A DNA stretch of 64,000 bases, from NCBI GenBank assembly GCA_020137815.1, contig CM035352.1, positions 496,001 to 560,000 on the forward strand, given 5' to 3'. This document shows positions 39,041-47,300 of this stretch, piece after piece. The notes below the pieces were generated by a model. That model saw only the letters and a program-made list of their open reading frames with translations, searched no databases and was not told the origin of the DNA. Within the stretch, counting starts at the first letter, position 1. Each line of letters begins with the position of its first letter. The position numbers were made by a program, and so were the translations under genes. Source of the DNA: Hormiphora californensis. Its lineage: Eukaryota; Animalia; Ctenophora.

Positions 39041-41258
39041 TCAATCTGGGCCTCTAACAACTCGTCCAACGACTGTGTTCTGAGACCAGAAGGGAAGGAT
39101 CGCTGAATCGTCAGTGACCTCATTGTGTATCTCTCCTAATCCAGGTATTTGGCGCTTGAAAAAGTACCTGACAGGGAAGGGGAGGGTAATTAACCTTGAG
39201 TACGTTCTTGGGGACGTCAAAAACGTCCAAAACATGCCATAAAAAGTGAGTATACCTCACTCAATTCATGTACGATCTGTAAATCCTTAATGTACTTCCC
39301 TTGAATACACTACTACTACCAGCGCCTCTGTGTTTACACACAATGACCCCGCTACTTACCTAGTTGAGTCATCACATGAGGCCCAGGATACGACCTCTTT
39401 AAACTGTCGCAACGTTATTGTAGGTCCAGGCAGCACTTTCCCGTAGCACATCGAGTCAGAACAAAACGTGTAAGCCAGCTGTATTTCCCCTACTTCCGAT
39501 CTGAAAGGTTTAGGTTAAATATACACGACATATATGAGAGAAATAGAGAAAGAGAGACAGAGATAGAGAGATAGAGACAGAGAGAGATAGTTCGTAACAC
39601 GTGATGCTTCTGAACTGAACTGCTTATGAGAGGGTGGGCTAAAAGGAAGCCACTTAGCAGTGGCTCCAGTGGGACCACCTAGCGGCTGAGGGCAAAGCGG
39701 AGAGAGAGGAACCTGGAGGAAAAGAGAGAGAGAGAGAGAGAGAGAGGGGGAGAGAGAGAGAGAGAGAGAGAGAGAGAGAGAGAGAGAGAGACAGAGAGAG
39801 AGAGAGAGAGAGAGAGAGAGAGAAAGGGAGGGGAATGGGGATAAGGTAGCTTAGCTATAATATCACTCTCTCTCTCACTCTCTCAGAACTGTGGAGCAGT
39901 CACTAAGAGATAAAAGTAGTGTTTTAGTGAAACACCGCTACCTGTTTGATCTCCCAGCTCGTTTCATTTTCTCTCTCATTCTCTTTATAATAGAGGTCAT
40001 TTGGGAAATGCTTCATTTTCCCGCCCGGCCGCGCTCCACATACATTCACAAGGGAAAGAGAAGGAGAAAGAGAGAAAGAGAGAGAAAGAGAGAGATAGAT
40101 AGAGAGAGAGAGAGAGAGAGAGAGAGAGAGAAAGAGTGAGAGAGAGAGAGAGAGAGAGAGAGAGAGAGAGAGAGAGAGAGAGTGAGACAGAGAAAGATAC
40201 ACATAAAATGTGAATCTCAAAGCTTTGTCCCCAACTGAGGATGAATTAGCTTTCGCGGTGTTATCTAATTACACGAGGGTCGAGAGAGAGTTCTTTGTCC
40301 CAGACCGCCCTCCCAGACCTCAACTTGGAGTTCTTCAGCCCCTTTTTAGGGGTCAGATCTCTCTCTCTCTCTTTCTCTTTTTAGGGGTCAGCCGGGAGAA
40401 ATTGTGCAGTCGCTTGTTAGACAAGACGTAAAGGACATGGGTCATGGTTAAAACTGCATATATTCGGTACAGGGCGAGTTTGTTTATCTCCCCGTTAAGC
40501 TCTCGTGGCCGGGGGGCAAAAGCAGCTGCAAAAATAAACAATGCGGCAACACTTACTTTGAGGAGTTGTTATCCCAAGTTTCCTCACAACTCATCGCCCC
40601 TTCCTCATCCTCCATCTCCGTGGCATTGTTTGGTTGGGTGGTCGTCAGGTGGTTGGCAGTGTGGGGTGGAGGTGGGGAATCTCCCGCTGTTGGATCTCTG
40701 TTCCGCAGCACCGCTGGAGTGTCCGCACCCTAGTAAGAGATGGATGAGAAAGAGAAAGAGAGAGAGAAAGAGAGGAGAGAGAGACAGAGAGAAAGAGTGA
40801 GAGAGATGATTGGCGAATGTCAGGTTATTAAAGAACAAGAGCCCGGGTACCGCAAAAAGGCGGTTATGTCATTGCTCTCTACAACACGAGGCGGTGTTAT
40901 CGGCTCGTCGTTTGATTATCATAGCACATGATCAGTGTGATTGATCAATGAACTTGTTCTCTCTCTCCCTTTCTCACTCCCTCTCTCTCCCTCCCTCTCT
41001 CTGTCTCTCTCTCTCTCTCTCTCTCTGAACAATGATCATGTTTGTTGTGCAGTGGGAGAAATAACCTGATGAGTTACTATAAATGATAATGAGGAAAGCT
41101 GATCAAGTTCGTACTGTTAAAAAAAAGCATATTTTACTAACCGGCGGTCCACAGTCGAGAGCTCCATAGTTTTGCATCCGAAGATTTTGTTCCAGTTCAA
41201 CGACGTTAAGTTTCGGTAAGAGCTCCTCCATCAACTTCTCGGGGGTAATAATAACGTT
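39041..41258 (-). CDS. AXIN: Axin-like Wnt destruction-complex scaffold, 3' exons (GSK3-binding helix and C-terminal DIX domain); 5' part lies in degraded sequence
   Basis: Exon 41142-41258 NVIITPEKLMEELLPKLNVVELEQ..; exon 40557-40729 (linker); exons 39360-39500 and 39041-39167 splice to EIQLAYTFCSDSMCYGKVLPGPTITLRQFKEVVSWASCDDSTRYFFKRQIPGLGEIHNEVTDDSAILPFWSQNTVVGRVVRGPD*. All GT-AG with compatible phases. Confidence 0.75.
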
Positions 41259-41399
41259 CTGAGAAAGGAGGGAGGGTTAGGGGATTGAAGGGAGAGGCCA
41301 AATAAAACTATTTAACTGACTCTCACGAGATCTTTGAGCTACTATAATGCCACTATGGTGCTCAACACATTTCCCTCTGGTATACGGTTGTGCTATAAT

Positions 41400-44300: not shown

Positions 44301-47300
44301 TTTCCAAGGCTGGGGTTTTGTTCACGAATTTTTGAAAGCTATATCTCCCCACAGGGCCCACTACCAAAAAGGCCTTTTACCTCTCAAAGACTCTTTAAAA
44401 GTAAAGGATAACCTCACCGCTGCATCTAACCTAGAGCAAGTCTGATTATCACAGCCTCACTGTTGCAGACCTGCAGTAGCTATCGTAAAACTCTCTCAAT
44501 ATAAATCGGTTGACGTCAACTCTTTCCCCCCTCGACCCTTCAATGGGCGGTCAGATGTAATTGCGATCATTTACTCGGCCCCATCCTTCCTCTCTAGCCC
44601 CATTTAAATTACCCCCCCCCCCCCCCCCAACAATTGGTAACCGAAGTCCCGGGGAAAAACAAAGAAGGGGGGCCCGCCCCACCTTGGCCTAGTAAAATTG
44701 TCTAATGCGAGGGGTGGTTTTTTTGAAGAAAACCAAATATATCGGCCGAAATAAAAGGGATTTATGATAAAGTTCGTTTTTTTTTTGGGATAATTTGAAG
44801 GGGGATAGCTTTTAAAAAATTTTTTAAATTTCTACTCTCTCTCACCGTGTGCTCTTGCTGGATCTATGCCTTTTAAAATTTGCTGGGCCCAAACGGGAAA
44901 CACAAAGAGGACCGCTACCCAAACACTTGACTCCTGAGAGACAGAGGGAGGGTTTTGTTAACTTTTTCTGGGAACGAATAAAAAGAAAGAAGGGAGAGAG
45001 GGGTAGAGAGAAAACCCCAAATTTATAACGGTTGCAAGGCCGGTATATGTGTAGCGGGCACTACACTGTCAGTGCGGTACTGTCTTGTTCAAGGGAAAAG
45101 GGTAGGACAGGAAGGGGGAAAAGGGGGGGGAAAAAGCACTACTATGAGAGGGGGGCATACCTTTTTAAAAAAGAAGAGTGTTTAAGAGGGAGGGAAAAAA
45201 GAGGATGCTGCCTCAGAACCCCCAAAATGAAGGGCCCATTTTTTACTCCATGTTGGGGTCCCCCTAACTCACGATTTGAAAAATTCCACCCCTCTTTCCC
45301 AACACGGGGGTTGTAGTGGCTCTCCTGTAGCCCCCAAAAAACCCTTTTTGGACCAATGTGGTGCACACAAACCGATAAATATCATCAAACACACGAGACC
45401 GCTCTGCACTTTTCCTCATCTCTCCAGACAACTCAAGCTGCTGAGGGGATCCCTCCCGAAGAAAGGTCTGGTAGATGTACTTCCGAAGAACTTTAACTCG
45501 GGATCGGGAATACGTGGTCCTCCCCGTCCATTCCCGGAGCTCCCGGCAGAGACACAGAAACTCAAAACTCTGGGGAAAAAGGACCCTTGCGAGATGTCTT
45601 TAGTTTGGAAAAAACTGGAAAAGGGAATTTCCGTTGTCCGGGATTGACGATAATCTCCCAAAACTTTTTTGTGGGAAAAACAAAAAAGGAGGTGGTTGAG
45701 TATTAACCTTTTCCCAGGGACAAGGCCCGGCGATTTTGAAGTTTAAAATTTATATTTGTACAGTATGGGAGGAGTGAAGCCCAAATTAAAAATTTGGGGA
45801 AACATTTTTTACACATATTTTTTTACCCATTTTTATCGAATTCACGGGAAAAGGATCCTTTAAGGGGGGGCCCCCATAATGTGATCTTTCCGGGGCAATT
45901 AACTTTGGAGGGGGGATTTGGGGGACGAGCCCCTGCCCTTCCTGCCCTTCCAAAACCCTAGTGGTGAATGGGATGATGAGGGTGGTGGTCTGAAACCTCC
46001 CCCACATCAGGGACCCGTTCACTACCTGCAGGGGGGGAAGAAGGGAAAAAAAAAGGGGGGGGGGGTTTCGAGGGGAGGGGGGAGAGAGAGGGGAGAGAGA
46101 GAGAGAGAGGAGAGGAGAGAGAAGGGGGGGGGGGGGGAAAAAAAAAAAAAACAGAGGAGAGGGGAGAGAGGAGAGAGAAAAAGGAAAAAAAAAAAAAAAA
46201 AAAAAAAAAAAAATGAAATTGGGAAAAAAGGAGAAGAAGGGGGAAAAAAAAAGGAAAGGAGGAAGGAAAGCCTTTCCCCGGGGAAAAAGGAAAAAAAGGA
46301 AGGTTTTTGGGGGGAAAAAAGAAAAAAAGGGGAGGGGAAGGGGGGGTTTTAAAATATGGTGACCCTCAAATTTGGCTATTGGTTTTTTCAAAACTTTTCC
46401 CAAATTTCCGGAACTTGGCCCTTAAACCCCAAAAATTACATTAAAAGGTTTTAACCAATTTGTTAATTTCCCCCTTTCTTTCCCCCGGACAAACAATTTC
46501 TATCCCCTCTTTGGGAAATATTATAAAGAGACAAAATTTGAACAAAAACTTATAAAACCAGGTGCAAGCCAAAAATAACCATATACGAAACAAAAAACCA
46601 TTTAACAAGGGTGACCCCCAAAAGGTTTTGGGGTTTTTAATTTTCCAAAAGGACCGGCCTCAATAACCGGGCAAAAGAAATTCCCAACAACAACGGAATT
46701 AGAAAGTTTTTTTTTTCCCGGGTTTAGAAAAAAGTGAAATTGGGGAAAGGGAAAGGACAGGGAAAATTTTATGGGGAAGGAAGAGAGAGAGAAAAAAAAG
46801 AGAAAGGGGGGGGAAAAAGAGAACAAAAAAAGGAAAAGAGAAGAAAGATGGAAAGGAAAGAAAAAAACTAGAAAAAGAGGAAAAAAGGGAATAAAGGGAG
46901 GGGAAAGGAGAAAGAGGGGAAAGGGGAAGGAAAAAGGAAAAAAGGGGAGGAAAGGGGAGGGGAAAAGGAGAGGGAGGAGGGAAAGAGAGGAGGGAAAAGA
47001 AGAGAGAAGAGAGAGAGAGAGAGAGGAAAAAAAGAAGGGAAGAAAAGAGGGGGGAGAAATGGGGGGGAAGAAAGAACCCAAGAAAAAGGAAAAAAGGGGA
47101 AAACAGAAGGGGAGGAATAAATGGAAAAAGAGGGAAAAGCGAAAACGAGAGAGATAAAAAGGGGGAGGAAATGGGGAGAAGGAAAGGAGAGGGAAAATGG
47201 GGAGAGAGAAGAGAGAGGAGAGAGAGAGAAAAGGGGAAAGAAAGGAAGAAAAGGGGAAGGCCGGGGAGATTTGGGGCTGCCCTAAAACCAGAATTTCAAA

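Follow-up and report, generated by a model that had tools for sequence, protein, structure and literature searches.

In the Wnt pathway, Axin acts as a scaffold, and its RGS domain is the usual module of contact with APC. Dishevelled, by comparison, has an N-terminal DIX domain followed by Dishevelled-specific, PDZ and DEP regions. The gene described here shares its DIX fold with Dishevelled and with DIXDC1/Ccd1 (Dixin), where the DIX domain is also C-terminal; neither of these two families is known to contain an RGS domain or to bear a GSK3-binding helix. We analysed a 64,000-nucleotide stretch of the Hormiphora californensis genome (GenBank assembly GCA_020137815.1, contig CM035352.1, positions 496,001 to 560,000 of the forward strand; henceforth "the window", with position 1 as its first letter) for an Axin-like gene on its minus strand. 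For ctenophores, a 2010 survey had reported "no evidence of axin" in Mnemiopsis (Pang 2010; PMC2959043), an absence that fed arguments on the origin of Wnt signalling, until the gap was closed between 2024 and 2026. The Mnemiopsis Axin (MlAxin) described since then has RGS, a conserved GSK3-interaction domain (GID) and DIX, and lacks a beta-catenin motif (PMC13455636; bioRxiv 10.1101/2024.10.27.620500); it did not bind Mnemiopsis beta-catenin in vitro (PMC13455636). That work, which mentions three ctenophores, appeared in 2026 (Mol Biol Evol 2026 msag185; PMC13455636) after the 2024 preprint.

The locus in the window is very probably the Axin orthologue of a pleurobrachiid ctenophore, present there in a single copy and predicted to be one gene from RGS to DIX that was broken by the assembly. 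As such, it is a gene of an already known kind, the orthologue in another ctenophore family. The original prediction, made by a model from the letters of the window, had mentioned an early genome survey as not having found Axin in a ctenophore; this was accurate (Mnemiopsis; PMC2959043), if since superseded. The novelty that it implied for a divergent ctenophore Axin does not hold, such a protein having been published and tested before (PMC13455636; bioRxiv 10.1101/2024.10.27.620500). What the locus adds is a pleurobrachiid orthologue of the same architecture, along with the presence of all three DIX families in H. californensis.

The window gene and MlAxin come from the same phylum and have in common the order RGS, GID and C-terminal DIX, the conserved GID, and the lack of a bilaterian-type beta-catenin motif. 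They differ in lineage, the window gene being from the Pleurobrachiidae and known here from sequence alone. The pleurobrachiid protein is also shorter (about 509 aa in the orthologue P0014), and its RGS domain lacks about 9 residues relative to the orthologues P0008 and P0004. Bilaterian Axin1/Axin2 share the domain order, and the window DIX is most like that of Axin-1 (1wsp, 2d5g). In contrast to bilaterian Axin, the ctenophore protein is about 500 rather than about 860 residues long, has a proline in the middle of its helix, an RGS domain that does not appear to resemble that of Axin more than those of other RGS proteins, and neither PF08833 nor the Pfam tankyrase-binding region, in the window gene or in its orthologues.

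Clean 3′ exons and the family of the DIX domain

Four clean exons lie on the minus strand between 41258 and 39041; in coding order, they cover a GSK3-binding-like helix, a short linker and, at the C terminus, the DIX domain. All peptides quoted in the original prediction were found on this strand, each at its reported place. Exons were searched one by one and unspliced, and the structure model used throughout was made for the orthologue P0014 instead of the window protein. The junctions of the clean exons are canonical GT-AG and in phase, and the four exons total 558 nt, or 186 codons. The GID exon (41142-41258; AG acceptor, GT donor, phase 0/0) carries the GSK3-binding-like amphipathic helix (…TPEKLMEELLPKLNVVELEQ…) and is identical to P0014 at 36/41 positions and 100% identical to the Pleurobrachia bachei protein P0001. 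It is followed by the middle exon (40557-40729; acceptor AG/GGTGCG, donor AA/GTAAGT), which is in phase with both of its neighbours, matches P0001 in tblastn with E = 1.9e-24, and contains a conserved G.DTP.V motif just past the helix as well as an acidic EEGAMSCEE island.

The DIX domain is divided between the last two exons, both on the minus strand. DIX exon 1 (39360-39500), identical to its P. bachei counterpart at 47/48 positions, matches Pfam DIX positions 2-36 (E = 1.8e-4; open piece 39359-39499), and DIX exon 2 with the stop codon (39041-39167) matches positions 42-74 (E = 1.5e-7; open piece 39044-39169). The intron between them is 192 nt long, begins with GT and ends with AG, and splits an AGG codon while keeping the frame. 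A TGA (39043-39041) directly follows the domain in DIX exon 2, which places DIX at the C terminus, as had been proposed from the splicing of two exons.

To which of the three DIX families this domain belongs was judged against chains in the PDB and against the genome's own paralogues. DIX exon 1 matched the Axin-1 DIX only (2d5g, 1wsp; E = 0.005), and a profile built from four ctenophore orthologues scored 37 bits against Axin-1 DIX, 27 against DVL2 and 23 against Dixin. Foldseek, run on an AlphaFold2 model of P0014 with predicted local distance difference test (pLDDT) values of 63-87 in the RGS region and about 47-71 in the DIX region, likewise placed Axin DIX at the top among DIX chains, and matched the RGS fold with template-modelling (TM) scores of 0.6-0.75.

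The genome holds three DIX loci. One of the other two, at C13:1849998-1850225, encodes a single-exon C-terminal DIX domain (zebrafish Dixin-A, 5y3c, 110 bits; DVL2, 57; Axin-1, 42) and is, going by these scores, of the Dixin/DIXDC1 type. The other, on the minus strand at C10:1173141-1183357, has a DIX half-domain exon for which DVL2 is the best match and, about 10 kb downstream on the same strand, the Dishevelled-specific domain PF02377; it is a predicted Dishevelled gene. With a Dixin-type gene on C13, a Dishevelled-type gene on C10 and the gene in the window, there would therefore be one gene per DIX family, the window holding Axin. A search of the genome with P0008 found one Axin-like locus, the two further matches, both weak, being the Dixin-type DIX on C13 and low-complexity sequence on C6; no second Axin locus was found by this search.

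Alternatively, the window gene could encode a DIXDC1/Ccd1-like or Dishevelled-like protein, its similarity to the Axin helix being coincidental. DIX exon 2 taken alone would allow this, scoring nearly equally on Dixin (17.8 bits), DVL2 (16.6) and Axin-1 (15.2), and so would an RGS domain that looks generic rather than Axin-specific. Yet both of these families already have genes of their own on C13 and C10, an RGS exon lies upstream in the window gene and is found in neither family, exon 1 matches Axin-1 only, and the family profile favours Axin-1 by 10 bits. A Dixin is thus disfavoured by the preference for Axin-1 and by the upstream RGS exon, and a Dishevelled by a DIX domain that runs to a stop codon, where that of Dishevelled is N-terminal and where the Dvl-type DIX and PF02377 sit on C10. 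We regard either identity as highly improbable. The order of RGS, helix and C-terminal DIX, the closeness to Axin-1 and the separate C13 and C10 genes uphold the earlier choice of Axin over Dishevelled and DIXDC1.

Orthologues, frameshifted 5′ exons and the assembly

When DIX exon 2 served as the HMMER query against the whole library, only five matches came back, among them P0001 (E = 2e-16) and P0002 (E = 2e-10). The nearest named protein was EukProt P. bachei P007786 (identical to P0001), which is 84-100% identical per exon and 90% identical over DIX exon 2; a ctenophore host had been raised as a possibility from the letters, and this match bears it out. Orthologue products of 569 aa (P0004), 577 (P0006), 637 (P0008), 569 (P0012), 562 (P0013) and 509 (P0014) were obtained from transcript-sized contigs (1.8-2.7 kb); in all of them Pfam RGS lies towards the N terminus, DIX is C-terminal and the helix segment comes in between. 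At least six independent contigs of other ctenophores encode RGS, GID and DIX, ordered as here, within a single open frame. P0014 scored 24.8 bits for RGS and 44.5 for DIX, and P0008, P0012, P0004 and P0006 scored 35-42 and 40-56 bits, respectively, such that the intact orthologues pass the Pfam RGS cut-off (24.8-42 bits vs 23.9). Within the clean exons of the window, P0014 is about 90% identical and therefore comes from a close relative. The exons of the window all lie on one strand, in the same order as in the orthologues, and are collinear with the full-length products P0014, P0008 and P0004.

This collinearity extends upstream of the clean exons, where the reading frame is broken. Using frameshift-tolerant protein-to-DNA alignment guided by P0014, with 20 shuffles of each protein segment as the null, we mapped four further exons on the minus strand. 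The N-terminal exon (45826-46029; approximately P0014 residues 26-86) has nine frameshifts and one stop as assembled, scored 101 against a shuffled null of 30.8 ± 5.2 (maximum 45), and contains a KSP.QKLL..M..PL motif that is conserved across ctenophores. The RGS-domain exon (45157-45680; approximately residues 87-265) has about 14 frameshifts as assembled and is identical to P0014 at 130/179 positions, with a score of 580 against 52.6 ± 7.1. Indeed, the RGS regions of orthologues map to 45671-45345 in tblastn (E = 4e-16 to P0008 residues 71-187; E = 3e-9 to P0004). Read as assembled, the frame of this DNA shifts over and over, and a six-frame search of the genome with Pfam RGS gave no match inside the window. 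Two linker exons with three frameshifts each come next, a serine-rich one (44845-44935; approximately residues 266-295; score 48 vs 23.1 ± 2.7, maximum 29) and another (43073-43158; approximately residues 296-322; 77 vs 26.3 ± 3.7) with a conserved SSKS..GSNASAAFDK[FY]Y block, which tblastn to P0008 also recovered. The clean helix exon then continues from P0014 residue 323, without frameshifts.

This layout revises two points of the original prediction. Of the span first given to the gene, 39041 to 45600, the lower boundary stands and the upper does not, the gene reaching to at least 46029. The frameshifted islands at about 44250-44600, tentatively read as RGS remnants, do exist as strings (44502-44473 and 44346-44317); they are intronic in the orthologue-guided alignment, lie between mapped exons and are unmatched in the orthologues, the actual RGS-coding stretch being 45680-45157. 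An alignment guided by the more distant P0008 gave spurious results, namely low-complexity "exons" (48.5-50.6 kb; 43.3-44.0 kb) and one wrong frameshift near 45415, all of which were superseded with the closer guide P0014.

Conceivably, the RGS exons and the GID/DIX exons are two adjacent genes on the same strand with separate transcripts. About 4 kb of noisy sequence does separate the RGS exon from the GID exon, and the P. bachei model P0001 begins at the GID exon. Against this, at least six ctenophore transcript-sized contigs join RGS, GID and DIX in one frame, two linker exons stand in the expected order between RGS and GID, and P0001, which reads through an intron, is itself a faulty prediction. 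Two separate genes are thus very unlikely. The P. bachei model, P007786, is 274 aa long and begins at the helix exon, from where it runs on across the next intron into the middle and DIX exons; it has no RGS half and ends in a wrong C-terminal tail. It is plainly a faulty fragment, and Axin has been mis-modelled in the sister genus too.

As to why the 5′ half of the Axin gene was hidden, this is most likely because it lies inside a stretch of about 7.8 kb of apparent raw-read quality that would have introduced about 29 artificial frameshifts. The homopolymer-inflated, low-quality block (41700-49500, approximate boundaries, no strand) contains every frameshifted exon. Within it, a base repeats its predecessor at a fraction of 0.34-0.61 of positions; this fraction is 0.20-0.31 in the clean flanks (40001-41500; 49501-51000) and, counted per kb, 0.21-0.38 elsewhere in the window, and the inflation affects coding and non-coding DNA alike. 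All of the approximately 29 frameshifts fall within the block at 41.7-49.5 kb, and none in the 186 clean codons. Were breaks evenly spread, a split of this kind would arise with a chance of about 0.67^29, roughly 1e-5, two thirds of the coding sequence being inside the block. The segments that separate the breaks keep 73% amino-acid identity to the transcript of another species. The H. californensis assembly went through gap closing by LR_Gapcloser, which drew on PacBio reads, and then through Pilon polishing (PMC8527503); the block is probably an unpolished long-read gap fill in microsatellite-rich DNA that short-read polishing left uncorrected. The original prediction had sought the concealment in microsatellite-rich, poorly assembled introns, which captures the bad, microsatellite-rich stretch and misses that 5′ coding exons were hit as well, not introns alone.

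A genuine pseudogene, that is, an Axin that decayed in this species with biological frameshifts and a biological stop, would equally display about 29 frameshifts and one in-frame stop in its N-terminal, RGS and linker exons as assembled, and the search with P0008 gave no second, clean Axin copy in the genome. However, decay would have to have spared the 186 clean codons while striking only inside the inflated block (roughly 1e-5), where the surrounding non-coding DNA is equally inflated. It would also have left 73% amino-acid identity between the breaks, and canonical splice sites with 88-98% identity to relatives in the clean exons; moreover, the published assembly did close its gaps with raw long reads (PMC8527503). 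A pseudogene is accordingly improbable. From the clustering of the frameshifts, the conserved identity and the assembly method, we infer that the gene is intact in the animal and that the frameshifts are artificial.

The news specific to this locus is technical, namely a developmentally important gene left half unreadable within an otherwise chromosome-scale assembly. Where surveys of gene content rely on assemblies of this kind, or on the P. bachei fragment, genes can once more be wrongly scored as lost or truncated.

The GSK3-binding-like helix, the linker and a putative mechanism

Residues 383-401 of human Axin1 form the amphipathic helix that binds GSK3 (PMC8786283, PMC5458252). We compared this segment with all 53,375 stop-free 19-mers that the window yields when translated in six frames. 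The best of them lay at 41249, within the GID exon, with a score of 39 against 29 for the next (z = 6.3). This agrees with the original prediction of an Axin-type GSK3-binding helix in the exon upstream of the DIX exons (41258-41142). The window helix keeps the P..K, EEL and L..V pattern of the human helix together with its hydrophobic positions. The same position was the best match in P0014, P0001, P0008, P0011, P0012 and P0013 (scores 36-43), and in the linker of the orthologues, where few islands are conserved, the GID is among them. In the model of P0014 the segment is predicted to be helical, with low confidence; the GID exon alone gave no match in Pfam or the PDB. We infer GSK3 binding by the window helix, in agreement with the published conservation of the GID in ctenophores.

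Several observations weigh against the assignment of the gene to Axin. At the helix, identity to human Axin1 is modest (7/19, the hydrophobic positions being conservatively kept), the more divergent P0004 and P0006 score only 15-17, and a proline stands mid-helix in all ctenophore sequences. Regarding the RGS domain, the longest open piece in the window (45599-45267) scores 18.3 bits with Pfam RGS (E = 0.003), below the cut-off of 23.9. In profile comparison, RGS4 came out as the best solved relative of the domain, which does not look Axin-specific. The best fold matches of the P0014 model were to RGS9, RGS1, RGS17 and RGS16, with no Axin RGS chain among the fold matches listed. For the DIX domain, neither profile nor DIX-only word-indexed searches returned any non-ctenophore Axin, Dvl or Dixin. 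Finally, the orthologue-guided search of the window recovered neither a start codon nor the initial ~25 codons.

The original prediction had found no beta-catenin motif after the helix, and our searches concur. The exon following the helix (40729-40557) had no Pfam match at E ≤ 10, PF08833 (Axin_b-cat_bind) gave nothing over the cut-off anywhere in the genome, and the orthologues, searched at E ≤ 5, returned Pfam RGS and DIX only. The absence of PF08833 does not exclude membership in Axin because this motif defines bilaterian Axin only; indeed, a beta-catenin-binding motif has been reported absent from the Axins of sponge, placozoan, cnidarian and ctenophore (PMC13455636).

Assuming that the gene is the Axin orthologue, its product would be a protein of about 500 residues, in which a short N-terminal region precedes the RGS domain, a serine-rich linker leads on to the GSK3-interaction helix, and a second linker, short and acidic, connects this helix with the DIX domain at the C terminus. 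By analogy with the biology of Axin, the helix would dock GSK3, and the DIX domain would polymerise head to tail and co-polymerise with Dishevelled. Lacking a bilaterian-type motif, the protein would have an indirect link to beta-catenin or none, as published for Mnemiopsis Axin.

All ctenophore Axins that we aligned have in common two short, lineage-specific islands in a linker that otherwise varies. The first, G-P-x-G-x-D-T-P-x-V, stands right after the helix (window 40700-40729; alignment columns about 380-393), and the second is the acidic block E-A-M-x-C-[DE]-E (window 40557-40600; columns about 536-545). Ctenophore Axins also conserve a Q-K-L-L…P-L motif in their N-terminal part. The acidic block lies roughly where bilaterian Axin has its beta-catenin-binding helix. 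One speculative, rather unlikely idea is that these islands are docking or phosphorylation sites that present a substrate to GSK3 (beta-catenin indirectly, or another protein) without direct binding of beta-catenin. If true, the destruction complex would be wired differently in the earliest-branching animals.

Repeats and neighbouring sequences

Besides the block that covers the 5′ exons, a raised same-neighbour fraction and homopolymer runs were seen at 10001-11000, 18001-19000, 24001-26000, 35001-36000 and 55001-56000, which may be natural repeats. Inside an intron of the Axin gene, an element of about 140 nt (44115-44254) has at least 79 matches of 74-100% identity on many chromosomes, often locally clustered, and is a dispersed short repeat or satellite.

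Upstream, a neighbouring gene on the same strand is represented by two open pieces (60487-61509, 341 aa; 61647-62468, 274 aa; both minus strand), neither of which matched Pfam at E ≤ 0.01. Downstream, about 0.9 kb past the stop codon of Axin, a reverse-transcriptase fragment on the minus strand (37504-38154; Pfam RVT_1, E = 2e-19) is probably the remnant of a non-LTR (non-long-terminal-repeat) retrotransposon.

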